In this document: positions 1,948 through 64,000 of the stretch, piece after piece | Layout: each line of letters begins with the position of its first letter | Numbering within the stretch: the stretch's first letter is position 1 | Assembly (NCBI GenBank): GCA_000320545.1 | Contig: ADNK01003345.1 | Span: 18,985 to 82,984 of the forward strand | Direction: 5' to 3' | Source of the DNA: Bigelowiella natans CCMP2755 | Lineage: Eukaryota > Protista > Cercozoa | Length of the DNA stretch: 64,000 nucleotides | Translations under genes and position numbers: made by a program | The notes under the pieces: generated by a model | Databases searched by the model: none | The model's input: only the letters and a program-made list of their open reading frames with translations | What the model was told of the DNA's origin: nothing

Positions 1948-3300
1948 AACAGTCACAATGAAATGAAATAAAGAAGACAATAATAATATATTTGTACATA
2001 GATTACTAGTGATATACCCATCATGCTTTTTCTAGATGGATGACACTCTTAGACATACTTCGTGAAAACCATCAGTAGTAGTCTCCTCCTCAACAGCGTT
2101 TGTTAAGGTGGTAGTAGGTATCACATTATGTTGTTGTGGCTGTTGTTGTGGCTGTTGCTGTTGCTGTTGCTGCTTTAATTAGATTTTTAGCCGATCATAA
2201 TCTGGTCGGAATGGGTTACTTAGAAGCCGCAGTGTGGACATTTCGCCAGCCTCTCCCAGAGGCACCTCCCTTCCCCTTCTCTCGTTATCATCAACAACAA
2301 TATGGTTGCAGTAGTGACACTAAGCACGGGATAGAGAAGACATCATATAGAGAGGAAGTGAGGAGAGAAAGGGGACTAACTAGCATTCAACGAATGTGAC
2401 AATATTTCTTGCATTGCTATCATGTGTTTTAGGGTAATATCAATAATAATGTTGAAATATGCGTTGTATTGATGGATAGCTCATCATATCTCCTTATAAT
2501 AGGTAGTAAATCGAGCAGCAGCCCGTCTGTTGTTGTTGCTGCTGCTAATGTGTCGTTGTCGTTGTCTTCGATGTCAACTTCATCTTCTTTGGGCGAAGAA
2601 GAAAACGAAGACGAAGAAGAAGAGCAAGTTCCGTGGACGTCACGTAATACCCCGATTGCGTTTATTGACTCTCGCACAAAAGTGAAGGAAACACGGTGTG
2701 TCGTAAGTAGACAAGCTTTGTAGCATGTCCATCATACTTTTTTAGTTTATATTTTCTTCTTCTTAATTGATTATTATCATAGCAGTTCAGGTAGGTAGGT
2801 AGGTAGGTAGAGGTAGAGGTAGGTAGATGGTCGCTGCTGTTGCTGCAATTATAACCTCCATATTTTCCACTCACAGATGTGCTTTAGAGGCAGACGTAAA
2901 GGCCACAAACATTGTACTATTAGTAAGAAAAGAAGAAGAAGAAGAAGAAGAAGAAGAAGCGATGGTTAGCAATGATTAGCGATACGGACGATCATCGAAT
3001 ATTGAGCCCATTTTGCTCCCCTTCCTCTTCCTCGATGAACTTCCATCTTGTCCTACTTTCCTTATTCAATGTGTTAATTTCTAAAGCAGTATCGACTTAT
3101 TATCTTCTATTCAATGCTTCTTCTTCTTCCTTCTTTACTTTGACAGTTAAACCAGGCGAACATTCCAGCCGAGAAGCTCAGCCAATCTGATTTAGAGACA
3201 AAATTTGTAGGAAGTTTGGCCGTCATATGGGAAGGTATGCTGGTAAATATTGTATAATTGAGAATAGTTAATGAAGCAGCACCCATATGTGATTTATGAT

Positions 3301-3351
<51 letters not shown>

Positions 3352-3524
3352 CACTGCATAAACATTTTTCCTCCTCTCCCTTCTCCCCCCCCCCCTCTTC
3401 TTAACCCCTCTTTCTACAACATCTTCTGCACCATGGAAGAACATCGCCGAAATCGTCTGATGGCAGGCATTGCACCCCCCAACTCACAGTCTTCTTCTTC
3501 AAGCAAGAAAGAGAAAGAAGGGGG

Positions 3525-3560
<36 letters not shown>

Positions 3561-4043
3561 GAAGAACCACCGTATTATCAATAACAGCGATAAGCACATC
3601 AGTAGCAGTAGTAGTAGTCGTAACAGTTTCAAATGTAGTTATGCCAGCAGTAGCAGTAAGATGCTACCACCGTTCCAGGAGGAGGAGGAGGAGGAAGAGA
3701 AAACCAGTGAAAATAAAAATAAAAGCTACTATGTAAAGGATGATAATAGAAGTGATGAGAGAAATGAGGATAATGTTTATGATGAAAATGAAAAAACCAG
3801 GAGCAGCACCTGGAATAACGATGATGATGATGATAAAAAGGAGGGTGGCCTTCAGCTTCCTCCTCCCCCTCCTACTCCACCTCATCGTCCTATCCAAAAC
3901 CAAGCGCATGGTCCTGCTTCTTCTTCTTCTTCTAACCCACGACGAACATCGTCCTCCTTCATACTACCGAGAGCAGAGTTTCGATCTTCCAATGAGCATC
4001 TTCAGAGACTCAAAGATCTTCTCATGCTATGGGCAAAGTCTGC

Positions 4044-4078
<35 letters not shown>

Positions 4079-6302: not shown

Positions 6303-6339
<37 letters not shown>

Positions 6340-6980
6340 GCCTGTTGCTGCTGCTGCTTCTCAAAAGAGAAGGAGATTGGTTGAGAAGATGCAGCACGAG
6401 GAATTGAAGAGGCAATCATCAAAAACTCAGCGTGTAAGTATGATTGTAGTAGTAGTAGTAGTAGTAGTAGTAGTACATGTCGTCCTCTGCCCGACGACCG
6501 ATCCGCTAAATAGTGTGAATGTACATTGTTATTACATGTACATAATAATGATGTTGTCTAATCTAAGTATCCTCATCGTCCCAAAATGAAGATGAATTAT
6601 GTTTGTTGACTTATTGAACGATGTGATAAAAAGTGTGTATTACTACTATTTATGTTTGTAAATCCACAGCAGCAGAAGCCACCACTCTCTCACCACAATC
6701 TATCGGAAGAAGAAGAAGAAGAGATAAAGAACAAAAATGAATTACGGGCTGATGTGGGAGTAATAGGTCACGGCAAGAAGACTGAGGAGGACAAAATTAG
6801 GATGATGGATGATTGCACAAAGAAGAATATGGGGGAGGAGAAGAAAGAGAAAAGCGGGAGATATACAACCTGCGTGGAGACGAAGATGAAGAACACCATC
6901 ATCTCTGGCTCTTCTCTCATTGCTGCTGCTGCTGCTGTTGTTGCTGCAAAATCTAGGAAGGGAATGGGGACATTGGTTTG

Positions 6981-7013
<33 letters not shown>

Positions 7014-8431
7014 CCCAATTGTAGCAGCAGTAGAGAAAGATGATGGAGAAGAACCAGAAGAAAAAGACGAGGAAGTACCTATGCAAACCTTATCATCATC
7101 ATCATCATCATCATCATCATTACTACGAGCTGGGGCAACTGCTATTACTCATAATACCGATGATAATGATGGATCTGGCAACAACAATAGTATGATTGAA
7201 AATAACAACAACAACAACAACAGCAACGACAACTTGCTGCTTCTCTCCCAAGAGTCCATGCAGACATGGATAGCAACGCCTTCGCCACCCAGCAGTGCTC
7301 ATAAGCACACTAGTGGACACTGTACTGACCAAGGAGGAGGAGGAGGAGGAGGAGGAGGAGGAGGAGTAGGAGACCAGAATGACAACAAGATGATGAAAAA
7401 CAATCACCAGGAGAATGGAGGGCCTAGAGCTGCCGCTGTCGTCTTTGGTGGTACTACTGTTGGCAACCAACTACAATTTACACTCACTACTGAACAATCG
7501 TCAACAGGCAGTAGCGATACTCCTCCTCCTCCTAATGCTGCAATTACAGTAAATGCCACAAGCATCGTAGATGATGATGATAGGGGCATAGGCGATGATG
7601 ATGATCATGATGATGATGATATAAATGATATATATACTACAGAGTATCAAAACTCTATGTTCCCTTCACCCTCTCTTCATCCATCGACGCTATCATCATC
7701 GTCGTCTTTTCCGTTGTCAAATCCTCGTGTGGTACCTAATCCAGAGGAATTTGAGTCACCAGATCATCATCATCATCATCATCATCATCATCGTAATGGT
7801 CATGATGATAATAACAATAATACTAATAGTAATAATAATGCTCAAGGGGAAGGAGAAGGAGCGACAAGAAGAAGAAGTGGTATGAGACGAATGGATGACA
7901 TTAATCACCATCATCATCATCATCAACTTGGTAAGAAAGATGATAAATATAAACAAGAGCCAGAAAAAGGAACATTTGAGGAAGAGGAGGAGGAGGAAGA
8001 GGACCACAAAGACCAGCAGCTCGATATTGAAGGAAGAGGAGAGACTGATAATGACGATGAAAATGAAGATGAGGAGGATGATAATACCTCTTCGTCTAAC
8101 AGCTCTCTCTCCTCCCTTTCTCTTTCGCTAACGCCACCTACCCCCCTCCCCCCCATGATGATGATGATGACGACGACGCGTAACAACAACAACAATACTA
8201 CTACCACTACCACTACTATTGCTACTACTACTACTGCTGCTGTTACCGATGGTCTATCCGGAGAGTCATCGTCGCATGGGGAGGAGGAGGAGTCCAAAAT
8301 AGGAGAAGACCGAGGAGGAGGAAGAGGAGGTGAAGGAGGAGAAAATCCTAATAAATTGGCAAAGATGGTGGTTGATGACAACCACATCATCAACCAATAC
8401 AGGGCACCACTATCATCATCATCATCAACAA

Positions 8432-8466
<35 letters not shown>

Positions 8467-8982
8467 CATCCATATCCTGGCAGCAGCAGTAGCAGCAGAA
8501 GAAACTATACTACTGCTAGAAAGCCGCCATTCTTTGTTTACAAATTTGCGCGTAAGCCACCTACATTCGCGGGAAAATTCGATGATCTGGATATAAATGA
8601 GAGGCAAAAGGGCAGCCAAATTTGTGGTGGAGTTATGTATCAAGAGCCTTTCTTCTCAGACCCAAAACATCGCAATTTTAAGCCATATATCATCACCTCA
8701 TTTGCAAGAGCTCGGTTCAGGATAGGAGGGTGAGAGAATCATCAAGACAACGACAAATTCATATAATAAATATGAAATCATCTTAATATACAAAACATGT
8801 TTACAACTAATGTACAACAACTATCATGAAGTACAAACGATTCGGTGTCAGTTAGCGAATAATAATAAAGACTACATTTAGAAAGAGACGGCTCATTTGT
8901 TGTAAATGAAGAGGAATGATCATTCGTATTTTATATCTGTTTATGTGACCATTGTCAACATATATATACCAGCAGAGCACGA

Positions 8983-9014
<32 letters not shown>

Positions 9015-9745
9015 ACAAATGGATGATGATGATTATGAGACATTGATAGTAGTAGTAGTAGAAGAGGTCTCATGTTTGGACGACGTTTATATAATTGACA
9101 CACACACACACACACACACACATTCTATCCATCCATCCATCCATCCATCACACGACTACTACTACTTACTACCGTAGCAATCCATCATCATTATGCGTCG
9201 AATCAATGTTACTTTGGGCTGCTGACACTACTAAATTAACAATTATGCCACTTTGTAAGTATTAATTCTTCTTCTTCTTCCTTTTGTTGTTGTTGATGCT
9301 GTTGTTATCATTTACCTACTAAATACTACTATTATTCCTACTATTACTACCTACTACTATCAGTGGTTTGAACGATGCTGAGTCGTTACATTACTATCCA
9401 TCACCATGGAAAATAAAGCATCGATCCCATTTTCGTCAACAGCAGCAGCAACAACAGCGCTACTATCATCATCATCAGCAGCAAGAGGAGGAAGAGGTCA
9501 TCAAGGAGAATAAGAGCTCTTGTGAAAACAACATTGTGGATCCTCCTTTTCTTCCACCACAAGTATTACAGCAACGTCCTCCTCCTCACCATCCTATCAC
9601 TCAAAAATTAGCCGTTTTTATCCCACCTACCCCCTTTGCCGTTTCATCATCACGCCTCAAGACACGATTCTTTGGTGGAAAGTTGGAAGCTAAAGGAGGA
9701 GGAGGGCGACAACTACTACAACCACCACCCTGCACCACCACCACC

Positions 9746-9776
<31 letters not shown>

Positions 9777-11522
9777 TAATTGCACCATCCTCCTCCTCCT
9801 CCTCCTCCTCCTCCTCCTCTCATCATCATCATCCACTCTTCTTATCGCCACGCATGCAGAAACGTGCCCTTAATACAGTTTTCACATATATTCCTCGAAG
9901 ACTTCCCCCATCCTCTTCTTCAGTGCGACTACTGCAATCATGGCAAGATGAGGAGGATGATGAAATGGAAAAAGAGAGACATTCTCGACGATACAAAAAG
10001 GAGGACGGGGAGGGGGGTGTAGTAGTAGGTATAACAACATCCACTCTTACTGCAACTCCTAAGAATAATCCTCACGTGGGTAGTAAGAGGAGGAGAACAA
10101 GCAGCAGCAGCAGCAGCAACAACAGCCGTCCCCTCTCACCGAAATATGATGAAAGATTCGAAGTCCAACGACCGCCTTCACCGAAGTCAGTCCTCACTTA
10201 TTATACAATCAGTTTTTCCTAGAAGAAAGAAGAAGATGTGAATGAGAAATAAATGATCATGATCAAGTGTAGTATTGGGGGGGAGGGAGGAGGAAGGAGG
10301 GCAGTAATTGAGCGATGACTACAAAGATCAGCTCCACAATTATTCGCTCTTTTATGTATAGATATTCAATGATTGTAAGACCGGTGTGTAAATTAATTAC
10401 TAACCAACTCTCTTTTTGGGTGTGTGAGTGTGTGTTTTCTGATGGTTCCTCGTAGATATGATGAGCGATCTTTTTTCACACCAAGAACGCAACTTCCACA
10501 GCGGCGGAGGAGGAGGAGGAGGAGGAGGAGGGTGTCATCATCATCAAAACTGTTAACATCTGCAACTAGATCATCACTATTACTATCATCATCTTCATCA
10601 TCACCTCCCTTGGTGTCAGTAGCGACGGCGGTATCGATGACTCCTCCTCCTCCTCCTCCTTCTTCTCTTCCTCCTCCTCCTCCAGTGCTACTAACAACAA
10701 CAACACCAACACCCACTACTACTACTACTACTAGTAGCCCCCATCAGCAGCAGCATGATTATAATCGTGCTGTTGATCATCCTGCAATGAGAGGAAAAGG
10801 AGGAGCTAATTGGAGATTATTACCATCACCATCACCATCACCATCATCATCATCATCCTTATCCCAAAAAGGACTTCAGTATCAGCGATTAGTGCCTCCG
10901 CCCTCTCTTTCTATCTCGTCATCAGCATCTTTAGTTGGTAATAGTAATAATGATGATGATATTGATGATGGTGGAAACAAGAAAAAAGCTACGATCTTTC
11001 GTCATAGTAAAGGGGAGAAAGAATCATCGGTATTGCATCAAGCACTGCCACCTCATCGAGAAAAAGGAGGAGGAGGAGGAGGAGAAGCGCCATCGTATTA
11101 TCTTTCAGGATCATCATCATTATTGTCTCAATCATCGTCATCATCATCATCACATGCTGCTGCTGCTGCTGGTATGATTATGACGCCATCCCCACAAAGT
11201 AGTTTGCATGGACATCTACTATCTCCTTCGTCCCGTCTCCTCTACACATCGAAGAAATCATCATCATCTGCAGCTGCTGCTGCACATTCTTCAGGGGTAT
11301 GCAACATTACGCAGCAAGGTACTCCATTCTCGGGGAAAGGGGGGTTGTCATCGGAGACCACTACTAAAAACGGGTTAGGCGGTGGTAACAAGAAGAATTC
11401 TGCCAACAAGTTTGGCGGTGGTTGTGGTGGGAATAATAAAAGCAATAGTCTTACGATGTTGGGGCTCGAAGTTGTACCGGATAGTACCAATAATAAAACG
11501 TGTTCTTTTAAGGCAACAGCAT

Positions 11523-11556
<34 letters not shown>

Positions 11557-12788
11557 AAGTAACGATAGTAGTAATAGCTGTGGTAGTTGTACGATGAATA
11601 CTACTCGAAAGCGGGATGAGGGGGAGGAAGGGAAGGAGGAGAACAACGCGACAAGTAAGAGCAGCAGCAGCAACAACAACAACATGAATGGGAGTAGTCA
11701 TAGTAGTAGTAGTAGTAGTAGTAGTAGTAGGTACGAAGACCGCATGCCTGATCCCTCCAAAGATCGGATTCTGATGGTGGTTTACCGCTTAAGACACGAA
11801 ATCAATGCCCCAGGAGGCCCTGCAGATGCCTCTAATGACCAAATGGGAGTTATTATAAATATCAGCAGTAGTACGACGAGAAGTATGATGAGGACTGCGA
11901 CGACAAAAGGAAAGGAGGAGGAAGAAGAGGACAAGAAGAAGATCAAATTGAGGAGGGCTCATGTGATTCGAGAACGTCGGCGTCTAGGTCTTCGATCTGA
12001 CGTGAAGCTTAGTTTGGTTGTTGGTGAGAATGCTGTCTTACATGAAGTTGTCAAAGTGGTGTGGCAACATGATCCAGATATACTTTTAGGCTACGAAGTT
12101 ACCTCGAAGTCCTGGGGTTATCTTCTAATGAGAGCAGAACTCCTTGGATATCCGCTGCTTCGAAATATATCTAGAAACCTCAACGATAAGAACATGGGCA
12201 ACCAAGCCAGCCTGTCAAGTAAAAGGAGCAGAGCAGCAGCATCATCGTCTTCTTCCTTCTTGTCAAGAAATAGTAATAGCGTCGCCAATAAGCAGCACAT
12301 TAGTAGTAGTAGCAGCAAGTATGGCAGCAACGACAACAACAACAACAACTTTTCCATCCCTACCACCACCACCCCAGCTGCTGCTGGTGGTAGTTCTTCT
12401 TCTGCTTCTTCTTCCATGCCCTCCTCTTCTTCATCCTCTGGTGGTGGTGGTAGTGGTGATGCTGCTGCCAACTCGTGGAGAATGAAACGTGATGCTGGAT
12501 TTAAAGTCGCAGGTCGTATCGTCTTAAATACGTGGCAAGTGCTACGACAGGAGCTCAAACTCAGACACTACGGCTTTGAGTCCGTATGCTTGCATGTGTT
12601 GGGCAGAAAGACACCATACATTAGCCCTGCGACACTAGCACGTTGGTTTTCTCACCATCATCATCATCATCACAAGTCCTCGTCATCGTTGTCATCGAGC
12701 TACCGTAGTAATCTTACGACAACAAAGGAGGAGGAGGAGGAGGAGGAAGAGAAGGGTGGGGATAATAATGGCCTCCTAACAAGATTCC

Positions 12789-12820
<32 letters not shown>

Positions 12821-13470
12821 GGTGGTGCTATGTCGCACTACTACTTACTGCGGTGGCGAGTGGTTAAGTACATGTTCGGAAGGTTAGACGGGTTATTTTC
12901 CATCCTTGACCGTATGGACCTTATCTCAAGAACATGCGAGCTTGCAAAGGTATAAACAACAACAACAACAACAAGAGGGAAAAAACAAGTTGTAAAAGAA
13001 AACGCGCAGTTTAAGAGCAGTAGCAGATATTTAGAATAAAATAAAATGATAATTTATATGGACAACGCCTCGGTTTCCCTCCAACCCCCCGATCCCCCCC
13101 CCTCTCTCTCACTCTCTTTATAGATAAAAGTAGTAGTATCTGCTGCTGTTTCTACTACTATTGGTGCTCGGTGCACTACTATATGATTAGTATGTATTCA
13201 GGTCTTTGGAATTCGATTCATCTCTGTTTTGCAGCGTGGTTCACAGTACCGTGTGGAGTCTCTCCTCTTGCGTATTGCCATGACACAGAATCTTCTTCTC
13301 CACTCATGTTAGGAGATAATAATAATAATATATAGAATAGTATGTATGCATGTATGTGTGTATTGTTTGTTGTACCCTGCATATGCTCATCAATTCCTGT
13401 GGTACGTAATTTGTATTTGCTGACCATCACCAGATAATCCTCAACAAATGTGTTCATTGTCGTCGTTATC

Positions 13471-21400: not shown

Positions 21401-21549
21401 GTAAGAAACCTTTTCAAAGCCAAAAGTTAATGCCGTAACGATATGTCAATTGTCTCATCTATTCGAACCGGGGTTGCAGATTGCTTAACTCGAGAATCAA
21501 GCTCTTGAAAGATCTCATCAAGATCCAGGGAAGGGGACGTGATGGCCAT
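18444..21549 (-). CDS. POLD3: DNA polymerase delta/zeta accessory subunit 3 (Pol32/Cdc27/p66), multi-exon with short introns
   Basis: The spliced N-terminus reads MAITSPSLDLDEIFQELDSRVKQSATP|VSYRWLSMHLQTPANLSKRILFEFY..LEAIYFVSG|..LEELKKTAEVDSIHVHSLRK. This matches the POLD3 winged-helix motifs as I recall them (VTYKWLS, AKQMLY, TYLVSG, SIHVYSIQK). The middle is charged and low-complexity. The last exon ends KKKKKVKTMLSFFQRK*, a terminal PIP-box-like motif resembling human POLD3 QVSITGFFQRK*. Confidence 0.88.
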
Positions 21550-21669
21550 GATGCAAAGGTCTGGTGTTTCGAATGCACCGGAACGCTTTCCCGGGGCGCG
21601 AATTTAATTGTGAAAAAAAAATGTTCGGAATCACTTGGCATCTGTTCAAAAACCATTTGGTTTTAGCTC

Positions 21670-23250
21670 TGCGACAAATGCTGCGAGTCACAGATGGCCT
21701 TGAACAAAATCCGACCATCACATTGCACAAACACCAGAAACGCATCCCTTTTTGTTGTTGCGTCTCATTCATCAACACAATGAGGTCAAGTTCATCATTC
21801 ATTGTTTGTTCTTCAAGATGATCCAATCGCAGATCGTCGTGTGGACATGGCCTTCAGGAAGTTTTTGCTCAGAGTGGAGGTCTTGCGCCGTCAGAATTTT
21901 GCCGCCAGTGTCATTGCCTCTCAATGACCAAGTCATGCCATTTTGGCAAACCAGCTAGTTGATTTGCTAGTCACAGTCCTCACTGAAACCAGTTCGAGGC
22001 ACTGCACTTTGCACACTGCAAGTGTCTTGCAACACTTTGGAAGTGTAGTTCTTCATCATTGTTTCATTGTTTCATTGTTTCAAGTCCAACATCATTTTTG
22101 AACTTGAGGGAAAGTTGAAGCAGTGAAGCAGTCCAGCAAGCAGCCCAGCGCAGTCAAGCAGTCAGGTTGTGCTCATCACAGCACCAGAGCAGCCAACGTG
22201 TCACTTTTTGGTCCTCGTTGACATTTCAGCTCGAAGCACTGCGTTTCGCACTTTGCAAGTCACGCAACACTTTGGAAGTGTGGTCGATCACTAAGTTTCT
22301 TTCCTTGTTTGTTCGTTTCTCCCTTTCGAGCGATCCGAGACGAACCTTGACCTCGATCTCAACCACTCGTTCGTTCATCGTTCGTTCGTTCACACGCGCT
22401 TTTGCAATTTCGACTTTTTTGACGTGCAGCGGTCTTCAGCATTGCACTCATTGCTTTGCACGATGCCAGCTGGTTGCCATGCCAAAGTCAAAAAAGTTGT
22501 TTTTTTCAAAAAAATCATCAAGGTGAACTCAGAACTGGCTCCACCCGTGTCTTTGCTCTGGTGCTGCGCGCTGAAGCACGAAGAAAATCGAAACTTTTGT
22601 TCCTGAGAGTTGGCCATCAAAACTTCAATGGCCGGAAAACAAGTCATTTGGTTTGAGTTTTGCAAACAAAAAAGTTTCCAAGCGGCGCAGCCGATGTCGG
22701 CTAGTTGCGAGTGACCAAGCGCCAGAGCGTTCAAGCCAGCAAGTGGTCCTCGCGTTTGCCACCACCACGTGAAACGCTGGCATGAGGCGGAGCTTCCTCA
22801 CGCACGCTCCAGCGCTGGCAGCGCAGCACATGAGCACGTTGTCTGTTGGCTGTTCAGCTGTGCACCGCCGTGTCTCGAGTGCCAATCAGCGTGACATTTC
22901 ACTTGCTCGTTCACTCCACTTGCGCTCAATTGTGACAATGCGTGCGTGAAGCATTGATCATTGCAAGTTCTTTCACCACACTCGATCTGGCATTGCACGC
23001 AGGTTTTCCACACGTGCGTGCATGATCCTGGGCGGATCGATCGATCGATCAATTGTGATCCCATGGAGTGGGTTTCAATGACACGCACGCATTGGACATG
23101 CTGCAGAGACTTCGTGCGCCATCATTGAATTGATCGACGAATGAACACACGGAGCAACGATGTCACACATCACGCCATGCTACGTGCACCAGTGCACAAC
23201 TGCTGCTGTTCCAGCAACGCACAAACCAACACACCTGCAGAATGCTTCGT
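21670..23250. other. TpA-depleted intergenic block 1
   Basis: Manual count finds 6 TA in ~1.6 kb (21956, 21968, 22046, 22292, 22702, 23181), all in CTA or TAG context; CA, TG and CG are abundant. Confidence 0.92.
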
Positions 23251-23851
23251 CACATCTATTTTTTTTCAAAAGCATGCACACAGACGCATCATTCACCCGT
23301 TGATCCGTGCTCACACACGGACTCAAGCACTGCATTCTGATTGCAGTCACATTGATCTGATGAATGCTACCTTCTATTTTGTGTCTCTGCTGGCCAGGAT
23401 TTACAACAGGATGTTTTTTCGAAAGCGCATGTTCCTGGTCCACAGTCACAAAAACCTCGCATGATTCCTTCCAATTGTATTTCATGTCCCAGAGACCTAT
23501 GGCATCTTTGTAACAAGCATTACCGCATCTGAATAGGGTTACTGTTGCAATCCACCTCGTCCCCCCCCCTCTCCCTAGATACAACTTCATCAAACCGATT
23601 TAAATAACATGAAAACACATCAATTCCTTGCAACTAATTTGACGCGGTAACGTATGCTTCACAGAGCTCAATGGTAATTTCTATTTAAAATATCTCATCG
23701 ATAGTACCTAAAAGCGCACACGGAGCATAATGTAGCATCAACTCTCATTTTACATGTTTTGCAAGTATAAAGATACCTAAATGAAATAAGTGACATTAAT
23801 TAATATGTTTGATCATGTCAGTTTGTCAGTAAAATTCGTCATATATGTACA

Positions 23852-31639: not shown

Positions 31640-32880
31640 GCAGGTGTTGAGTTGCAGGTAGATTTGGTGCATTGCAGGGTGGGTTTTAGTTGTCGCACCA
31701 GCTGTTTGTGATGGTGCAGCTGGCAATTTTGCTCCTTCAAAATTTTGTGAAACGAGGTCGACTTCGGTCGGCACTGCTTTCATTCATTCATTCGTCATCA
31801 GCGCTGCGTGCTGTCTGTGCATCGTGTCGAAAAACAAATTGTGATCAACGTTTCAATGTTTCAATGTTCTGCTCGTTGTTCTTCTTCGTCTAGTGCAACA
31901 AAATGTCACCGGGTTTGACCGTGTTGTGAAAATTGTGACGCCAACTGCACGACCGTCTGCGTCTCACTCTGGCACTCGTGACGTTTCACCATGGTCAAAT
32001 GCTGACACGCACGCATCCGTTTGAAGTGGATGGGACAGAACAACTTCAATTTCTCACAGCTCTTCTTGCAGCGAACTTTGGACCAGTGGAACTCATGCTA
32101 GAGGCAAGCATGCACTAGTTCTGGAGTTCAGTGAAGGGCTTTCATGCGGGCTAGCGCTAGACCTAGCTAACAGTGTGCGTGCGTGCCTAGGTGCCAGCGT
32201 GCCAGCGACCGCCCTGTTCATCACGCCCATCGTCACAGCTAGACAGTGTCGATCTTGTTGTGCTCAAACAACGCAAATGACAGCGCGGTTGTGCATTGTG
32301 GCGTGCAGATGGACTTGAAACATCCTTCACAACTAGACAAACTAGACGAACGCCATGGTGCTTGGTGGAAAGTGTCCATCACATTCGGCGGCACTCCATG
32401 CATTTCACACATCCAAACAGAAAGCCAATGCACAGTTCAGCGCGCACGTTTGTGCACGAGGGGGAGAACAATGAAAAATGGGGTTGCAGAGGGCTCATGT
32501 CATGCGTCGATCAATTTCTTGATGAGTTTGCTATTATCATCATTGTCAATGAGAGGACACGCATGCATTTTTGCAATCATGACGATGATGTCTCATTCCA
32601 CCTTTGACCCTTTGAGTTTGCGCGTGGTGAATTCTTGGCATCTGCCACTCATCGGATGAGTCGCTCGTCTAGAAAGGCAACAGCATCATCAGTGTGTAAC
32701 AAAAACAAGCCTACAAATTGTTGTCATCACTGCACACACGATAAGCTTCATCAAATTGTGTAGATGCCTTTCACTACAAACAACATCCAATCATTGCAGA
32801 GAACAAAAAGAAATGCATTTGATTCTGACCTTCCCCCAAGTATGAGCACGAAAAACTTTTTGATGGCTCTGAAATGATGC
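31640..32880. other. TpA-depleted intergenic block 2
   Basis: Manual count for 31700-32690 finds 14 TA, of which 11 are CTAG. Confidence 0.9.
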
Positions 32881-39584: not shown

Positions 39585-40640
39585 TCAAAAGTCATAATTA
39601 TTTGCATCGTTACGATCCACATTCGCTTTTCCGATGGAAGAAGAGTTGATGGCACCACTGCCTTGAATGCTTCCAGCCGCCACCTTCAGATCGTCGTTGA
39701 CGATGCTGCCTGGAACTTTCGCCCCAGCAGGGAACATGTCGTCATCATCACCCTCTTCAGCATCGTTCGACAGAAAGGCCTTTTTCTCTTCGTTGTCTCC
39801 ATGCTCTTCTTCTTGCTCCCCTTCCCCTACAAGGCTTCCTTCTTCATTTGGGCGTGCGTCCGGGATAAGGTAAGGTAGCAGTACGAGCGGTAAGCATGGT
39901 AGTATAGAAGTGATAAGTGCGACTAGCCAGAGGTTCTTGAATTGATCTCCTTCATCAGTGGACCCATTGGGCCGCACGCCCATGACGTCTAGGAGGAACG
40001 CTCCTGAGTAGTTTGATATGTTGCTTCCGAGATTCGAAGCAGAAGCGAGAAGAGCAAACATCGTCGCCTCGAGTCCCTTGGGGCATAGTCGCGACAAAAT
40101 CATGACGGCTGGCATATAGTTGAATTCCTTAATCACAGTCTGAAGTGCCGCCGAGCCTAGGACGAAGACACGATCAGATAGCCCCCATTGTTTGTTCCAT
40201 CGAAGGAAGACGATGATGTTGAAAAGGGACAATCCAGAGTATACCAATGTAGACCAGAGGAAGATCGTTCGGTATTTCATGTTGCTCAAGTAGCGGTTGA
40301 AGATGAAGATCCCAATGATTGCCGTACCAGAAGCAACAAGTCCTATAGCAGTGGTGTAGAACCAATCGGAGAAATGGGGGCCTTCCGGATACTGCTGGGG
40401 ACCATCTGTGAAAAAATAAAAAGTGGCTCCCTCGATAGACATTGAAAAAAGCGTCTGGATCAATGTGTAAGCGTTCACTTTCGCAATAATCGGTGGTGTC
40501 CAGCGAAAGAAGCCTAAATGAAGAAGATATTCAAGAGTTATTGATGCTACATAAAGATTGACTAAAAACCATCCACGATCAACAGAACTAGATATGGCGC
40601 TCATTGTCTCTTCTCTCCTTTCTTTCAGATAACCCCCCCC

Positions 40641-40687
<47 letters not shown>

Positions 40688-41989
40688 GCTACATGAGTGT
40701 AAATATAAATTTATACACATACATACATGTGTGCACATATTATAAAGTATCATATGCTCACTTATATTTTAATATATCAATCCTCCCCGCCCCCCCCGTA
40801 ACTACTACGTACCTAGGATAGTGATGAAACCGCACATGAGAGCAAGAATGAGGTTAAAACGGATGTTCTTAAACCAGACACCAGATTGGGCCAAACCCAA
40901 ACTGAGGACAGTAATAAGAATGGCCAGGTATGTGTAGTCGGAACCCCTTGTCCTCATCACAGTACGATTGTATTGTATGCATTGGTTTCCTCCGCGCACG
41001 CGCTTATCATCCAGAGCGTTCATCACCACGGGAATAGTGCCCAGAAAGATCTGGTTGATGAGAATAATGATGATGATAATGACCACGAGGAACACAACAA
41101 TTCATCATCCATAAAGTAGTGGTAGTTGTAGTAGTAGTAGTGATAAAATACTACCGGTATGCAGCATATTGCAAAGACATAACGTGATCCCAGGCGCTCG
41201 ATAACAATCCCCACTGTGCCAACTGCTAGTAACGACATGCATGACATCCCCCCCCAGATGTAAGATACAAGATCCGCGTTGATGGATGGGTGCTGCTGGA
41301 TCTTCTCAGAATATTTCGCCTCAACAAGAAGATCATTCAATGCAATGTGCATCTGCGCAGCAAAGAGACATGAGAGTCCCACTCCAATTGAAATCTGGTT
41401 GACAGGTGTCGTCCCAATGGCTGCCAGAGCTATTATTGCACAGAAGGAAGTCGTGAGCATGTATGGAATTTTGTGATACCCAAATAATGCTATCGTGTCA
41501 CTCCCGATTCCCATGAGACCCTTCAAGGCCCATGGTGTCATTACAACTGACAAATAAATCTGAAGTGTAGATGCATCTATACCGCCCCGGTCACGGAAGT
41601 AGAATGAGATAGTGTTGTTGATGTATGATTGTACGAGGCCTTTTTGAAGGTGCTGAAAAAAACGGGAATATAAATTCATCAGTTTTTGAAATAGTAACGA
41701 TTCAGATTAGCTTGGGAGATCAATCCTATGGTATTTATTGAACAAAGCTTCTGATATACTTACATCACCCACATACACAGAGGCAGAAAGAGATATTACT
41801 AAATGTGTTGAGCACACGTTGTACCTGTACAGCGAAGATAGTTACAAGCAAGCCTGTTGTTGCAGTCTTCGAAAGCTCAATAATCCATGTTACGAAGTAG
41901 CTGATTCCAAATACTGACCAGTAGCATGGATTATACTTCCAGTAGATAGGTAACTCTCCCCTTTTTGTCTTGCTCTGTGAATCATCCAT
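39585..41989 (-). CDS. BT1 family folate/biopterin transporter (MFS-related)
   Basis: Family motifs PWALKGLMGIGSDTIALFGYHKIPY, LNDLLVEAKYSE and MPAVMILSRLCPKGLEATMFALLAS, with about 12 hydrophobic segments across ORFs 41023-41679, 40805-41095 and 39585-40649. Confidence 0.93.
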
Positions 41990-51738: not shown

Positions 51739-53880
51739 TACTACACACATACATATACTTCTATGATGATGATGTTTAGCCTACCATCGTGCTACATGTA
51801 AGAACAACTGTACATTTACGAACATGTCCCTACATTGTTGTCACAGCCTACACACACGTCATCATTATCATCATTATCACCATTAACACCCATAGGCCCT
51901 ACAGCCTACACACACGTCATCATCATCATCATCATCATCACCATTAACACCCATAGGCCCTACAACTTGAAAAGTAGTACTAGTCCTCCTATCTATCTAC
52001 ATTGTCGTCGTGTACATCATCTTGTTTTTTGTCACTCTGATCGGCCATCGTCATGATCAACCACCCCTTTTCGCATTGTCTGATTTTCTCCACGGTGCTG
52101 TGATTGTCATTTTGATCATATTGTTATAATTATTATTCTGGCTGCTGTAAATGTGATAATAGGAGTTCTCCACTGGAATTCCAAAGTGGGTGATGACGAT
52201 GATGACGATGACGACGACCTCCACGCTCAAGGAAGAAGAAGAACAACAAAAAAAACAACAACAACAGCAACAACAACAAGGAGAAATGAAAGGGGGGAAA
52301 GCGAAGGAGAAGAGGAAGGACAAAGGAAAAATAGGGAAGGGGTTACTAGCATCGGAGATCAATTGTGCTGGATCAACGACAAAGCCGATTAGTCATTATT
52401 CTGCTGCTGCTAGATCATCATCATCCACAAAAGCGATTAGTCATTATTCTGCTGCTGCTAGATCATCATCATCCACAAAAGAAGCGGATGATGTTTCGAC
52501 TTTGTCGTCATCATCACTAGAATTGTCATCAAATCTTCCCTCCTCCTCCTCCTCCTTATCATCATCATTATCATCATCATCTTCTTCTTCTTCTTCCAAA
52601 ATCGACTACCTACCACGGTACCTTCTGGATCACAAGGAATGGAGGTCTCCATACTACTGGAAATCATTGAAAGCAACCGAACATCTCATTCGTCTTGAAT
52701 TTCCTACACCACTTACAATCTGTGGATATGCTCTCAGAGCGACTGCAAACAGGTGGTCATCGTCGTCGTTGTTTGTCGTTGTTGATGATGATTCTAAATG
52801 ATTGTGTAATTATGATGATGGTGATGATTGATGGTGGAGCACAGTTCTTGCTATCGAGAAGCTCCCCAAAGATGGCGATTTGAGGTTCTCCACGGTCAAC
52901 AACAAGGAGAAGAAGGCAAAGAAGGAGAAAAGAAGAAGAGAAGCCACAGTAACGAATGGCAATGTATAGATTATGTTTCAAACTTTGATAAATGGTCGTA
53001 TTCGAGCCCACAGCTCGGTTTGCATCCGAATCAGGTAGAGGATAGCTAGTAGTAGTAGTAGTAGTAGTAGATAGCAATACTAGCAGAAGGTTAACTATCG
53101 TCAGTGCCTGTCATCATCTTTGGCCCTGCTGCTACTGCTGCTGGTGGTTTCTGGTCATGGTGATGGAACTGTTGTGCGTCTGTCGCTATCTTTGTTGTAT
53201 TCTTCTTATTCTTAATCTCTCCATATTCACCAAGAGAAGAAGATCAAATGGGGGATATTGTCGTTTTCATCATTATTTTCATTAAATAATGCAGTTAATA
53301 ATGTGTAGGTTCCTGGCGATTATCGTTCTTTTTCCTTCGTAGAACCTCAAAAGAACGTTTCGCAAGTGCAAATACGTATTTTGCCTCCTCTCATTCCATT
53401 TATGAATGAAACAACAGGAAAAGAAAGAACATCATCATCACCAGCAGCATCACCATTTGTCACAAGTCTGTCTTCATTTATTGTGATTGGGAGAATCACA
53501 AAGACAACATCTAATCATCTTTTTTCGGCCAGAAAGTAAATAGATGATATTATCCATGATGATGATGATGATGATAAGTTGTTTCTCATCATTGTTAAAT
53601 GCAAACATCTGATCAAGTGACGTTTTTGTATGGTTTTAGGTACGGGCATGGACATCATGGAGGTTTGCAGCATGGAGACCTCCTTGATGAGAATAATAAT
53701 GATATCAGAGATGATCGCAGCCCCCTTCGCCGACGACAACGACATCGTGATCATTCAATTTACTACAACACAAAGAAGTTGAGGGTGTTTGGAGGGAGGA
53801 GCAGATATAACGTAGCGGAGAGGGTCAACTTCAATTCACAAGATTTTTCTAGATTCATTCGTGTGATGAGCGGTAATTGA
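47240..53880 (+). CDS. DnaQ-like 3'-5' exonuclease (WRN-exo/EXD2-like) followed by low-complexity sequence and a discoidin/F5-8 type C-like domain
   Basis: ExoI IVGFDTEWG..VSVIQLA (47683), ExoII VGVALRGDLRRL (48500), ExoIII GNWDAKQLNSRQLNYA|ALDAY (50099-50146 and 50357). Downstream: EHLIRLEFPTPLTICGYALRATAN, YREAPQRWRFEV, VPGDYRSFSF and GGLQ..KLRVFG. The 3' end is uncertain; a possible donor at ~53872 could continue the gene. Confidence 0.75.
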
Positions 53881-57325: not shown

Positions 57326-58107
57326 GAATATGGCTATTAGCTATCCTACTGCTGTTAAGATTGCTAAATCCACCGTCATTGCGATGATGAAAGAATAACG
57401 ATGTCGACTGATCTAATAATAACATTACAGGAGAGGAAGCGAAACATCGTCATCATGCTGAAGAAGAAGCATCTTCCTCAGAAGTAATAGCACATAATAC
57501 TCCTTACTGCTGCGAGGATGATGATTCTGGTACTACTACTACTACTACTACTACTCAAGTGAGGATTGGAAGAATACAAAATTAAGAACATACGCTGATG
57601 ATCATTACAATGTGATAATGATTGCTATTCTTTCCTCACATGTCGTTGGTATAATTCTCAAAGAATATCTGCGTAAGCAGCTGAAATGTGAACAGCGTTA
57701 ATATTAATGTCTTTTCCGATGGTTTTGATCATGAATTTATGTCGCGAACAGCAGATGAGAACAGCATAGAAGGAGATCACACAAGTTTGATAACAGGCTC
57801 TACTACGACAACACGGATGACTACACCGATAATTGGAGGTGCTGTTAATGACATTGTGAGAAGAGATCACGATGATAGTTTGGATAGTGAGATCATTGGT
57901 AAGACTACTTCTGAGGTCAGAACAGAAGATGAAACTTCGAATGATGTGAACGAACCACAGCACTACGACAACCACTTGGCTTCTTCGCTGAGAGAGTTGA
58001 GCACTACGACATGCCACAACATTGATGATTTGAAAAGGCCAGTAGGAGAGGTTCCATCTCAATCTGAATTTGATTCTTTGTCTCACCTTGTGTTGACATA
58101 CATTTGA
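54760..58107 (+). CDS. Exons encoding a second discoidin/F5-8 type C-like domain and a probable terminal exon; either a continuation of the exonuclease gene or a separate gene
   Basis: In-phase GT-AG exons 55070-55116, 55463-55499 and 55746 onward give LHWIAIQFPCRVRITNYSIRTRPDEQAGATGPRSWFLQG. Further exons give WTLLHSEKDAKKWRYPG..VPGEIRDFDIS..FRLSISQL, paralleling the first domain. ORF 57688-58107 may be the last exon. Confidence 0.6.
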
Positions 58108-58119
58108 TCTACAACTTGA

Positions 58120-59063
58120 CGAGACAGGAAAATGTCTTGGCAATTCTGTGGCACACCATTGTTCTCTGAGCGTTTTTGCTTGAGTTGCATGCCCAGCATG
58201 TGTGACATTGCAAATCAAACACAAGCTAACAAGGCATTGCCACTTGTGCGTTGTGTTCACGACAAATCGGATGTGACTTCTGCGCAAAATCAAAATTGCG
58301 AAGAGCACATTGCTTGCGAATGAATCCATCGCCGAGCAAAAAACCTGGTGCGCACTTGTGACTGCTCCCATCAAGCACGATGCAAAGACAAAAAAGGAGC
58401 GCAGGGTTGGGGTTGAAGTTGCAAATGCACGATGTTGACAAAGATGATGATGTTGGTGACAATGATGATCACGATGACGATCATGATGTGGAAAATCGTG
58501 AAATCCAGCCAGAGTTGTCCAACAAGTGACAGTGATGTCACTTCTTGTGCACTCCACAACAGCTTCTTCTTCTGCAATGCCTTCTTCTTCTTTTCAACAT
58601 CAAAGGGGTGATGACACTGCAGACTGATCCTTCTTGGTGGAGAATTCAAGTTCAAGGAAACACGGACGACGATGATGATGTCTCTGGCAGTGCTTCACAA
58701 GAAAACGAGCGAACGACGGAAGAAGAAGGTGCAGGAGGAAAACATCACCAGCAAGCTTCAGCGTCACCACCACCCTCATCATCACCATCGTCAGGAAACC
58801 TCCCTCCCAGAAAAGGCGGTGCGTCGTGGCCAGCAACAGCGACGATTCGTGCACAACGTGTGAATCAAGTCTCAACGACATTCGTCTTGATTGCTGACAT
58901 CGCCACATTGCCATCATCCTCATCATTGCCACCACCATTGCTGCTGCTGTGTTGCCACTGCTGCCACTTGCCAACAAGGCGACCGACTCGCTGCACCTGA
59001 AGTGAGGTCTCCATTGGAGGTGAAACCACTGCCACTGCTTCCACTGCGACTTCAGTTTGCATG

Positions 59064-59115
<52 letters not shown>

Positions 59116-62100
59116 GGTTCGTCGTGTCGCTCATCCTTTTTCATCGTGCATGGAAAAAGTTGGCATCACTTGATTCCTCAAGGTTCTCCGGGGCTCTGGG
59201 GCTGTGAACACAACCAGGATCATCAACGAAATGCCCAGCGCATCGAGAGAGATTCTTGAGCTTGGAGAGTGGAGCACGCGCATCCCAACACCTTGAAGAA
59301 GAGACACTGCTGCTGCCACTTCTGCTGCTGCCACTGCCACCACTGCCACTTTGCAGACACACGATGAAGAACAAAAGACACGATCTTCTTGCGGATCAAG
59401 AGCAAGTTGTCAGTTCATTGCGACAATCATGACAGCGCAACGCTGCGATCATCACCACAACGTGGACACAACGTGTGGCAGCAAGTTCGCAGCAGCATCA
59501 AGTCACACACGTGTGGGTGAAAGCACGATGCATGCGATGATGGATGTGATGAACGATCAAAACCATGAAATTGCAACAAGTCGACAGCAGACAAAGCACA
59601 CAACAACGCACATCACGACGTTGTGCAATCACGCGCAAGCAGTCTTTCACGTGTGTCAATTGGTGCAATCTTGCACTTCATTGCACCCGCATTGTGCAGA
59701 TGTGGCAACGTCTGAGACGTGTGTGTGTGCGCGCATGCCAGCATGCCATCGTGTGTGGATTCGCATGTTGCATGTCCATCACTTGATGAAAGCAGGGTTA
59801 CACGTTGCTCGCGCGCACGCTGGAATGCGCGCAGGGCACATTGTCAGCCAGACTGGCAGAACGTGCACGTGCACAATGACACTGCCAAGTGCATCACGGG
59901 AGCGCGGCCACAGCACAAGTGGAGATCAGCGTCATTCTTCATTCAATGACAAGCTTCGCAAGTTTGCGCACGTGACAATGGCACTCATCGCACAGTGCCA
60001 ATGTGAGTGTGCAACAACGTGGCTGCTGCCATTGCCACGAGTGGTCATCCAGCGACGAACCGTCACGTTTCGCACAATCGCATCACCACGTTGTTTTCGT
60101 GCAATCCAAGCAACTGTCAACGATTCAACAACAGGCAAAACAGGTGATGACTCAACAATCAACACACGTCCTGTGCTTGCCGACCTCCGGAAAAATTGCA
60201 CAAAAACAATTCGTCATGCCAGCACACGTGCACGTGCACACCTCCGCTGCATTGCACAGCCAACAACACATTGGGATGACCATTGAAAAAGTTTGAACAC
60301 TTCGTTGCATCCGTCTCACACACAAGAGACAAACAGGTGCAACTTGAGCGCTGCAGCCGCTGCGTTGCACAGCCACATTGGGATGACCATTGAAAAAATT
60401 TGAACTCTTCATTGCATCCGTCTCACACATCAGCCAATGGCCAGAAGAGAAGACTGACTGGGGCTCCTCCTCGTGGCAGCAATGCAGACAAAAAACGTCC
60501 TGCGTGTGACACTGAAAGCACAACCTTCGTGTGACCAAAGACAAAGCACCCTTCTGGCCTTCTTGGCGGGGGAGGGGGTGGATTTGAGCCCTTGGATTTT
60601 CGCAAAAAGGGCGATGGCGACGGGGACTCATCCGCTGTTTGAGACAAAAGATTGCGATCAGAGTGAGAGTTGTTGCAAGTGCCAATCTTGCACAAATCGA
60701 CAGGACAACATGTCAATGAGAAAGCAAACCCATGGTAGCCGTGCAGATGAAGACGTTGAGAACTGCAAGTGCGTTGTGGCAGATCTGATGATGCACTTCC
60801 TTCCACCTTCTCCTCCAGACCACTGTTTGTCCACGGTGGCCATTGCAAGCATCCCACCTTCCACAAACAGATCAGTTGTGTTGCAATTGTTGTCAACATT
60901 CATGAAGAGGATTTCTAGATGTGTCCGGCATGCATTTGGTGCTGACATTCCACAAACAGATCGGTTGTGTTGTGATTGTTGTCATCATTCATCGGCTTTT
61001 CGATCGAACCACCCTCGCAGGATCCTTCAAGTTGAGGGATTGGGGTTGTCGCAGAACAAAAACATCCTGTGATTCTTCTTGTGCGCGTTGGTGCACTCAA
61101 AACTCATCACTCACACTCATTCTTGTTGCACACACAAGTGCTTTGCTTCCTTTGCTTGCGTGCTGCTCAAGATGAAAAGATCGAAGCACACAAAGGAGGA
61201 ATGCACAGGGAGAACAAAGAGATCAAGATTGCACGAAGCCGCACAGGTCATTGGTGAGAGGTGTTCGTGGTGGGGTCTGGACTGGTGAAGCACAGGCCCT
61301 CATCGGCTTCCATCATGAGCAGATGGCGAGAAAATGAAAACATGCGACTGTTCCTTCGTTTCTGTTCTCATGCCAATGAGCATCAATCATTTGGAGAGCC
61401 ACTTTGAGATGGATGAAATCCGCATTTCACCTCTGGATCACAGGAAATGGATGAGCACACAAGAGAGGCAGCTACGCAAGACAAGGACGATGTGCAATGA
61501 AGAGATGACACATCGTGTTCTGAAAAGCCATGGTGTTGCTGTGGTTGATGTGATGATGCTGCTGACAAAATGTGCCAGAATTGCAAGGATGCTGCTGTCA
61601 TGACACCATTTCATTGATGTGATCCATTTTCATTTCTGGATTGGAATGACCGCAAAGCAGCAGTTGATGGTGGCGAAGGATCCATGGTGCAAGATGTTCC
61701 GCAAGATTTTTGAGGCTGATCAGGGAAGTGAAGTGCATTTCATGCATTGTTGCGGGTTGGTGGCGAATGACAAAATGAAGGGAAGGTTGCAGTGCATTCG
61801 ACTTTTTTCTCCCCTTGAAAATGGTGTTGATGGGAGGTGGATGATGCGGAGCAAGGTTGCAAAACTGAATCAAACAACACACCTGGCTCGATTCCGGTCA
61901 ACTGATTGAAACACAATTCACATGTGACATCAATGCATTGAAATGTTTTTGAATGATCAGGAAACGACCGGAAAAGTGAGCAGTGCAATTTTGTTCATGG
62001 AGAAAGCCACACTGCCACTGCGTTCCATGAGAATTCTCTCCATTCCTGTCTTTCTTTGAACCACCATCGCCTCATCTCAACATTTTCAAACAAATCGTGA

Positions 62101-63870
62101 TTGATGGCAGGGCCACGACGAAGGAAAGGACCTTGAAGATTGGTCAAAGGATGAAGTGAAAGCGTGGTTAGGATTCTTGCAAAACAAGGGGGAGTTCGAA
62201 TTCAAAATCGAGAAAGTTGCTTGCCCGGGAGAATTTTTTGCTGCGATGACCAAAGCAGACCTGTTGAGACGTGCACCGAGCTGCGGGGACCACATCTCCA
62301 ATGCGAAAGAGGCGCTTCTCAGCAAGCAAAAAGGTGGTGTGCATGCTAGCTCAACAGACGTCTCACGCGTGTTCTCTGTTGCATGCTTTGTCATCGATCG
62401 ATGTGGAACAATGCCCACAGATGTTGCACGCAAACATCCAAGAGAATTCATTTTCATGGATGCGCACATGAGTGAGTGTGCATGTCAGCTCAACAATCGT
62501 CTCACGCCATTTGTGCAACACATGCAACATGATCATCATCTCTCAATTTCGTTTTCTCAATTTTGGTGTTGCATTGCAAGAGTTTCAATGGACTGTGACC
62601 TTGAGCACATTGTGTTGCAAGATTTCACAAATGATGGCCTTCATTTTGTTTTGCAATTGTCAGCACCTTCTTCTCCCGAAAGACAACCTGGTGAACATCA
62701 ATCCCCTTGAAATTCTCCCTTGCGTCCAGTTCATGTGTGCGTTCACTGTCAATGGTGCCACACAACACTCACACATGCACATGTGGCAAATTCAAATTTG
62801 ATTTTGTTTCAGCAAAACGCCCTTTCGAAATTCACAGACCGACAGAAACGAAAGTCGAATTGGGAGAGCTCACACTGGAGGGGGGAAACAATCAGGAGAT
62901 TGGATGTGCAGAAGAAATGAAGGAGGGAGATTTTTTCCATGTCGACGGAATGATTCACGCAGGTTTGAAGGAAAAGCAGTTGAGCAAAGAAGCCGATGAC
63001 AGAGTGTTGCTGCATCTACGCGCTGAGGGTTGTCAACACTTGAGGAGGCTCGAAGAAGTGGAAGGTGGAAATGCACTTCTTGTGGATGGACCCAAAGGAT
63101 CTGGAAAATCTGTGACATCTTGGACTTGGGCAAGGCCAAAAGCAAAACAGGGGAAATCTGTGTTGTGGATGCACGTGGATGATTTTGCGACTTCTCATGT
63201 TGCGATTTTGAAGCTTTTCAAGGATGACATTCGACGTGTCTGTTTCGGAGATGAACCAATTGAGTTTCAGCAACTCGTCAAAAGCGATCACGTGCTTGAT
63301 GCTCCCGAGGACATCATCATCTTGGACGGATTCCACAGGAAAGACCATGAGGAAATTTTGACACAGTTGTGGGACACCATTGATGATCTCGCACCAACTC
63401 GGATCAGCATCGTTGTTTCGTCAATGACGGCTACCTTTTCTGCACAAGAATTGAAGATGGCCCGTGCCAAGAAACATCGCATGGCATCTTGGACATTCAA
63501 GGAGTGCAAGGAGGTTGTTGAAAACAGGGCATTTCATCGACAAGTGGAATCAAAATTGGGAGGTCATGGTGACAAGAACGCCAAGTTGTTGCACAAATTT
63601 TGCTGCTCAGGCATTTCTGCCCGTTTTGCTTTTCATTTTGCGGTTGAAGAAGTGAAGGAAGAGATCAAAAGGGGTGCGATGAGCGTTGGAAATTTGTCAG
63701 ACACAGCAGAAGGAAGTGTGACTTCAGCAAATGAAAATGCAGTGAATGCACTGTGCGGAGGAGTGCGATCACCAAGTGGGGAAGCACGAGATGTCTTCGT
63801 GAGTCAATGTGCTCATGGACCAATTTTTTCCGATCAGGGTCAGGATCTAGGTTGAAACCACAACCGCGTT
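58120..63870. other. TpA-depleted subtelomeric block 3
   Basis: Manual count finds 10 TA in ~5.75 kb where several hundred would be expected from base composition. None of the ORF-track proteins I read wholly within this block contains Tyr. Confidence 0.95.
62110..63855 (+). pseudogene. Crinkler/RHS-like spliced gene: SAM/Pointed-like header plus P-loop NTPase, hypermutated and truncated at the telomere
   Basis: Exon ~62110-62333 encodes LEDWSKDEVKAWLG..MTKADLLRRAPSCGD (SAM/PNT-like). A micro-exon lies at ~62664-62690. Exon 62813-63855 has Walker A ALLVDGPKGSGKS, Walker B IIILDG, and SWTFKEC, KFCCSGISARFAF and VSQCA, which become CRN-like SWTFKEY, KFYYSGISARF and VSQYA when C is read back to Y. 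The family call is pattern recognition, not a database hit. Confidence 0.7.
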
Positions 63871-63874
63871 CAGG

Positions 63875-63946
63875 TCAGGGTTGGGGTCAGGGTTGGGGTC
63901 AGGGTTGGGGTCAGGGTTGGGGTCAGGGTTGGGGTCAGGGTTGGGG
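63875..63946 (+). repeat. Proximal telomere-variant array (TCAGGG TTGGGG) x6
   Basis: Six exact 12-bp dimers read directly from the sequence. Confidence 0.97.
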
Positions 63947-64000
63947 TTAGGGTTAGGGTTAGGGTTAGGGTTAGGGTTAGGGTTAGGGTTAGGGTTAGGT
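63947..64000 (+). repeat. Telomere (TTAGGG)n; chromosome end
   Basis: Eight perfect TTAGGG units plus a terminal TTAGGT, G-rich strand pointing to the window end. Confidence 0.97.

Follow-up and report, generated by a model that had tools for sequence, protein, structure and literature searches.

The stretch of DNA analysed in this study, hereafter the window, comprises 64,000 nucleotides from the nuclear genome of the chlorarachniophyte alga Bigelowiella natans, and its right end corresponds to a chromosome end. Close to this end lies an open reading frame (ORF) of 382 codons, starting from TTG, whose product does not contain a single tyrosine. A sequence-only reading of this region had described such a Tyr-free frame with an intact Walker A motif and with Cys or His in place of expected aromatic residues, and these traits were confirmed in translation. 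The product carries KFCCSG, SWTFKEC and VSQCA; its Walker A motif, GPKGSGKS, corresponds to GPPGTGKS in the family consensus, and a Walker B-like motif, IIILDG, to DIxIxDG. The exon map was obtained by aligning the transcript contigs L001–L003 to the window, which resulted in six blocks. The features of this chromosome end are the following, in window positions:

57950–63946, no strand: TpA-free zone, composed of intergenic DNA, exons, introns and proximal telomere variants, up to the canonical repeats
61110–61247, + strand: exon A, 5′ region of the mutated copy (L003 1–138, 97.8%)
61439–61491, + strand: exon B (L003 133–185)
61645–61897, + strand: exon C (L001 34–286, L003 186–438)
62116–62333, + strand: exon D, SAM-like N-terminal domain (transcript alignment; one transcript begins the block at 61957)
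62662–62690, + strand: exon E, 29 nt (100% identity, all three transcripts)
62707–63855, + strand: Tyr-free ORF, 382 aa, made of an intron read-through (62707–62811), then exon F, then a telomere-like tail of 26 nt that closes with TGA
62812–63829, + strand: exon F, P-loop NTPase and helical region (L001/L002 alignment; paralogue homology stops at 63829)
63088–63111, + strand: Walker A motif, intact
63830–63874, + strand: junction after the truncation point, with degenerate telomere-like hexamers (TCAGGG, TCAGGA, TCTAGG and others) and a short unique stretch
63875–63946, + strand: twelve proximal telomere repeats, TCAGGG and TTGGGG in strict alternation
63947–64000, + strand: canonical TTAGGG telomere repeats, up to the window end

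The splice sites that had been proposed from the letters alone (62333/62664 and 62690/62813), as well as an exon start at 62813, match three paralogous transcripts within 1–2 nt. The first 35 codons of the ORF (62707–62811) correspond to an intron that is read through, and its final residues and TGA stop codon fall within the degenerate telomere-like hexamers. The ORF product is matched at 100% by the JGI gene model P0001 (jgi|Bigna1|146458|aug1.114_g21166), which has 491 aa and is devoid of Tyr over its entire length. Considering the family median of 2.7% Tyr, about 10 of these residues would be expected per 382 aa, and the chance of finding none is approximately 2e-5. The length of the frame was compared with 500 first-order Markov simulations of the island, in which the longest ORF averaged 194 codons, with a 95th percentile of 260; since only 0.2% of the runs reached 382 codons or more, the ORF exceeds what chance would produce. 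In the ab initio model P0001, the frame adopted through exon C (61619–61909, residues 1–70) differs from that of the intact paralogues, and this wrong-frame start is a by-product of stop-free hypermutated DNA, which misleads gene finders.

The ORF is embedded in a zone of about 5.9 kb in which the TA dinucleotide has almost disappeared, with 11 occurrences left between 58101 and 63860. In 1-kb windows from 58001 to 63000, the observed/expected ratio of TA was 0.01–0.07, while those of CA and TG rose to 1.56–1.86 and 1.51–1.87, respectively. The left edge of the zone is sharp, with a TA found about every 12 bp until 57906 and chiefly in resistant contexts such as CTAC/GTAG from there on, and the introns and flanks within it are TA-free to the same degree as the exons. 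No viral or transposon domain was found when the ORFs of the island were searched with Pfam. The zone also contains an ORF of 311 aa (59351–60286, + strand; 329 codons from stop to stop), for which a homologue search and Pfam returned nothing; given that about 1% of simulated TA-free sequences yield an ORF of this length, it probably either reflects the lack of stops in this DNA or is what remains of a gene decayed past recognition.

Other TpA-poor islands were observed in the window, at 21501–23301, 31640–32880 and approximately 52190–52800. When three TpA-poor islands were compared with the window by BLAST, only microsatellites were recovered, and the islands were not seen as repeats of each other. 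In the island at 31.6–32.9 kb, 22 TA persist and around half lie within CTAG, which fits CTAG being a resistant context. Regarding the remaining gene content, two ORFs on the minus strand (39585–41679) match the BT1 folate/biopterin transporter family, with E values of 1e-51 and 3e-30, and are probably a single split gene with normal TpA content, while a row of long ORFs of 487, 551, 693, 284 and 843 aa (3271–12955, + strand) suggests a large mobile element or polyprotein.

The origin of the TA-free composition became evident from the paralogues, which the sequence-only reading had proposed to look for and which were indeed found. A protein search retrieved a cluster of proteins at least 90% identical to P0002, a protein of 657 aa that is 89% identical to the window ORF. 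The cluster is formed by the gene models Bigna1 91461 (scaffold 101, EST-extended) and Bigna1 84512 (scaffold 144), whose chromosomal place and flanks were taken solely from the models, together with six transcript-derived proteins. In the protein alignment, every member of this cluster shows Tyr at the positions occupied by His or Cys in the window copy. The family has at least three genomic copies in B. natans, which are more than 95% identical outside TpA sites. Along 1868 aligned nucleotides, the paralogues contain 92 TpA sites, and in the window 43 of them read TG, 43 read CA, two read CG and four are unchanged, so that 88/92 (96%) were converted, versus 20 other substitutions of mixed type, a background divergence of about 1%. 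What the locus itself demonstrates is how the bases were substituted, in which direction, and that intact paralogues exist.

The coding effects of these changes can be followed in exon F, which differs from L001 and L002 at 62 of 1018 nt; 57 of the mismatches are of the TpA type (22 synonymous and 35 non-synonymous) and five are not, and neither an indel nor a new stop was found against the paralogue transcripts. The prediction that A→G and T→C changes would recode a gene while leaving it open was supported, the process being specific to TpA. All 12 Tyr codons of the paralogues became Cys (seven) or His (five), ATA was changed to ATG or ACA, GTA to GCA or GTG, and CTA and TTA to CCA, TCA, CTG or TTG. 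No stop was created, because A→G and T→C cannot turn a sense codon into a stop. Since the same changes destroy TAG and can open TAA, TGA is almost the sole stop remaining in the island, with 168 occurrences against one TAA and six TAG. The lack of Tyr is not a trait of the wider family, as residues at seven of the 12 positions are aromatic in at least 56% of 48 distant homologues, and four of the 12 are aromatic in 87–100% of them, almost without His or Cys. The refutation foreseen in the sequence-only reading, that homologues would also be Tyr-free at these positions, therefore does not apply.

The two strands were altered equally (43:43), and the choice was unclustered along the sequence (runs test z = –0.87). 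Among the 11 surviving TpA in the island, 10 have CTA on one strand, compared with a background of 37.5% (p = 4e-4), and CTAG and CTAC are the main survivor contexts in the other islands of the window too. On the edited strand, a weak preference for T-T-A or T-A-C was detected at the locus (p = 0.02).

It could be argued that the TA-free composition is native, resulting from selection against UA in RNA or from foreign DNA with an unusual composition, or that it arose by RNA editing followed by retro-copying. TpA is in fact mildly under-represented in most coding DNA, and even the intact paralogues have an observed/expected ratio of 0.58–0.59. However, near-identical paralogues have TA at the 92 sites, both strands were altered equally and interleaved site by site, and telomere repeats are affected as well, which makes this the least probable of the explanations considered, one with hardly any credibility. 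A processed retro-copy of edited RNA was rejected, given that the introns are kept and are TA-free too. More generally, the unclustered 43:43 strand distribution and the retained introns argue against processive single-strand, transcription-coupled and cDNA-mediated routes.

A hypermutation process that matches this pattern has already been described in B. natans, converting TpA to TpG or CpA (Mettrop et al., bioRxiv 10.64898/2026.01.13.699255). That mutation accumulation study recovered 302 new point mutations in the nuclear genome, and two regions, one derived from an NCLDV and the other from a virophage, accounted for 231 of them. Of these 231, 230 were A→G or T→C, all 230 on TpA, with a rate about 1000-fold over background and with mutations in some lines only. 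The same preprint reported 124 TpA-depleted clusters and proposed an ADAT2-like adenine deaminase, Bn78255, as the enzyme, and it lists Bigna1 146458 among low-TpA genes in its Table S6 (324 genes) and Table S8 (470 genes) (bioRxiv 10.64898/2026.01.13.699255). When its main text was searched for telomeres, tyrosine, stop codons, paralogues or the context of the altered sites, nothing was found. The present tract shares with it the organism, the nearly exclusive A→G/T→C changes on TpA, and the loss of TpA with gain of CpA and TpG clustered in 1-kb windows. On the other hand, the preprint stresses viral and foreign targets, whereas here the mutated copy lies next to a telomere and belongs to a CR-type family, cellular or selfish, without viral or transposon domains, and conversion reached 96%, while TpA is just 1.8-fold depleted in the active NCLDV region of that study. 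That the process is an ongoing germ-line mutation of DNA is taken from the preprint (bioRxiv 10.64898/2026.01.13.699255).

A sequencing artefact could also mimic such a pattern if a modified base at TpA were misread in cloning or sequencing and the true DNA still had TA. A modified T or A at the palindromic TpA would yield CA or TG and rarely CG, and telomeric TpA is a known site of base J in kinetoplastids. Nevertheless, the paralogues in the same assembly keep TA, and the boundary of the zone is sharp and its survivors lie in a specific context. Furthermore, in the Illumina data of the preprint, these changes arise de novo relative to the 2012 reference, are stable and line-specific, and occur in some lines only (bioRxiv 10.64898/2026.01.13.699255), and an artefact is consequently regarded as extremely unlikely. 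Nanopore miscalling in particular was rejected, as the reference assembly dates from 2012 (JGI) and the same change is seen to arise de novo in the Illumina data of the preprint.

The second feature that distinguishes the window copy is its truncation, likewise demonstrated at the locus. Homology to the paralogues breaks at 63829/63830, and their transcripts run about 700 nt past this point, so that the window copy lacks around 210 C-terminal residues, including the whole C-terminal domain. What follows the break is telomere-like. The twelve proximal repeats, TCAGGG and TTGGGG, are the two possible TpA-conversion products of TTAGGG, the canonical repeat found beyond them. The strict alternation of these two products over 12 repeats would occur about once in 2000 if the strand were chosen independently in each repeat, and could be due either to amplification of a mutated 12-mer or to a strand choice tied to helical phase, since the 6-bp spacing corresponds to about half a turn.

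Subtelomeric multi-copy families can be cut by chromosome breakage followed by telomere healing, as in the case of the yeast Y′ elements and the fungal TLH helicase genes. Similarly, a member of the present family abuts the telomere, with its coding sequence ending abruptly in telomere repeats; unlike Y′ and TLH, the family is of an NTPase-nuclease type, and a subtelomeric place for other copies is hinted at only by the tail of Bigna1 84512. In the protein of this otherwise intact model (P0154, scaffold 144), the last ~100 residues lack Tyr and abound in Gln, Gly, Trp and Asp (…DQGQ…GLGVW…SGLG), and they resemble translated TpA-converted telomere-like repeats, which hints that, judging from the protein sequence, the 84512 copy may also be telomere-adjacent.

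As for the identity of the family, the sequence-only reading had called the product a Crinkler-like NTPase, which proved correct in part. All Pfam matches of the ORF (62707–63855) were to P-loop families and sub-threshold, and an exhaustive search gathered 210 family representatives, among which the NTPase of P0011 (residues 178–379) is homologous to the query with an E value of 2.8e-16. The family is thus widespread, although scanning metagenome contigs with P0002 returned no related locus. P0011, a distant homologue, has a true Crinkler N-terminal domain (PF20147, 58.8 bits) ahead of the homologous NTPase. This PF20147 header was absent from the window ORF and from the B. natans paralogues, which instead present a weakly SAM-like N-terminus (SAM_PNT on paralogue P0157:1–125, E 0.0035, under the Pfam cut-off). 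In the AlphaFold model of an intact paralogue (pLDDT 79.7), the N-terminus is poorly modelled and is followed by a P-loop domain, a helical region and an alpha/beta C-terminal domain. The P-loop domain has fold matches in RFC, in STAND proteins (Avs5, NLRC4 and CED-4) and in mS29, and a profile search of solved structures returned generic P-loop matches only.

The nuclease part of the Crinkler-like assignment depends on the C-terminal domain (P0002:478–657), which was folded alone with a pLDDT of 90.8 and is missing from the truncated copy. Its best Foldseek E value was 0.15 and its best VIA-align Z was 4.9, both weak, although the VIA-align list is dominated by PD-(D/E)xK nucleases, including NucS, EcoT38I, McrC, Can2, SdaI and HamA. 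One Asp of this domain does not vary, and one Thr and one His are each kept in at least 90% of the members. The full-length protein can be modelled as a CR-type or STAND-like P-loop NTPase followed by a helical region, with a possible SAM-like N-terminus and a possible nuclease-like C-terminus, both of these end domains being weak assignments.

CR proteins, in the summary of Zhang et al. 2016 given in PMC5289972, combine a header with a P-loop NTPase, an HTH and an REase. The B. natans family resembles them in that its NTPase module is homologous to one fused to the Pfam Crinkler N-terminal domain in P0011, that the domain order of the intact paralogue (NTPase, helical, alpha/beta C-terminal) fits the commonest CR architecture (PMC5289972), and that the best fold matches of its C-terminal domain are PD-(D/E)xK nucleases, though weak (Z ≤ 4.9). 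It departs from them in having a weak SAM-like domain instead of the Crinkler Ubl header and in belonging to a free-living alga. Thus, the B. natans protein is related to the CR proteins of the NTPase(+HTH)+REase class and would work like them, but it lacks the Crinkler header.

The sequence-only reading had left two outcomes for the mutated gene, silencing by missense load or diversification of an effector repertoire. According to the latter, the mutator would generate diversity in an effector-like gene family, and the Tyr-free ORF would be one of its diversified, functional alleles, a possibility that agrees with the open frame, the intact Walker A and B motifs and the fast evolution of CR-type families (PMC5289972). 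However, the conversion approaches saturation irrespective of coding effect, including at positions that are 87–100% aromatic family-wide, introns and intergenic DNA were converted equally, and with only two outcomes per site little diversity is possible. Moreover, the copy is devoid of the whole C-terminal domain as a result of the telomeric truncation, and only 11 differences separate the expressed paralogues over 1.7 kb, just one of them of the TpA type. A role in diversification is accordingly considered very unlikely and found no support, whereas the evidence supports decay. The protein search returned no protein of the mutated type derived from a transcript, which is weak negative evidence, and the 90% cluster of the mutated copy consists of the ab initio gene model alone.

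Altogether, the ORF is best interpreted as a dead, telomere-truncated copy of a multi-copy B. natans gene, hypermutated at TpA, a reading to which a probability of roughly 0.9 can be assigned. A residual truncated product may still be made from the Tyr-free copy, because both Walker motifs, A and B, are preserved and no stop interrupts the frame along the aligned exons. In the sequence of events proposed, a gene copy at a chromosome end was truncated at 63829/63830 and capped by telomere repeats, after which the telomere-proximal 5.9 kb, comprising exons and introns as well as intergenic DNA and the innermost repeats of the telomere, would have been driven near saturation by TpA→TpG/CpA hypermutation. 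Each TpA would have been altered once, with either strand equally likely and independently of its neighbours. The replacement of TAY by CAY or TGY removed Tyr, and the recoding of ATA, TTA, CTA and GTA and the long open frames are an arithmetic outcome of the same process. The rate excess at TpA would amount to at least a few hundred-fold, because 96% of the TpA were converted against a background divergence of about 1%. From the 211 mutations, 3132 generations and 6169 TpA given in the preprint (bioRxiv 10.64898/2026.01.13.699255), a rate of about 1e-5 per TpA per generation was estimated, from which saturation would take around 3e5 generations.

The candidate enzyme would be an adenine deaminase acting on double-stranded DNA, as the preprint proposes. 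TadA/ADAT2 and ADAR resemble such an activity in performing A→G changes with a 5′ U/T preference, but the known enzymes act on RNA or on single strands, while the pattern at this locus requires that both strands of the chromosomal DNA be edited, one site at a time and with no strand-coordinated runs.

The process is also reminiscent of fungal RIP, another dinucleotide-specific, regional transition hypermutation of DNA in which genes are inactivated by substitution load. Nevertheless, RIP converts CpA to TpA, creates TA and stops, is triggered by duplication and affects all copies, whereas at the B. natans locus TA is lost and CA/TG gained, stops are impossible and intact paralogues coexist. 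It could still be supposed that the window copy was targeted for being a duplicate, as the family has several copies nearly identical outside TpA sites and the preprint itself likens the process to RIP (bioRxiv 10.64898/2026.01.13.699255). Against this, Bigna1 91461 and 84512, equally repeated, keep all their Tyr codons, the island reaches about 3 kb upstream into DNA without a detectable homologue and outward into telomere repeats, and the main target in the preprint, the NCLDV region, is single-copy (bioRxiv 10.64898/2026.01.13.699255). Because equally repeated paralogues are untouched, the targeting does not seem RIP-like, and repeat recognition is judged improbable. Targeting by location or by silent chromatin would be a better fit to the locus, and it can be tentatively proposed, at less than even odds, that the mutator follows telomere-proximal or silent chromatin and takes no cue from foreignness or repetition.

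The mutator is not new, since it was published in 2026 and the gene is already on the lists of that preprint (bioRxiv 10.64898/2026.01.13.699255). It represents a regional, dinucleotide-specific DNA mutator in a eukaryote, with a direction opposite to the usual GC→AT bias. In this context, the locus works as a natural experiment, as the copy and its untouched paralogues differ almost solely at TpA, and it adds to the published description the near-complete saturation (96%), the strand symmetry, the resistant CTA context and the independence from repetition. It also exposes an annotation hazard, since TA-free DNA is nearly stop-free and leads gene finders to call long spurious or wrong-frame ORFs.

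Finally, the finding of a cellular CR-type gene at a telomere as a target bears on the interpretation of the process as a defence against foreign DNA (bioRxiv 10.64898/2026.01.13.699255). If the mutator were indeed directed by chromatin, every chromosome end would have a TpA-free zone of variable length, which would advance inward through host gene copies and include the innermost telomere repeats, while transcribed paralogues elsewhere would be spared. In that case, the survival of CTAG and CTAC and the alternation of TCAGGG and TTGGGG would report the sequence and helical-face preferences of the enzyme.
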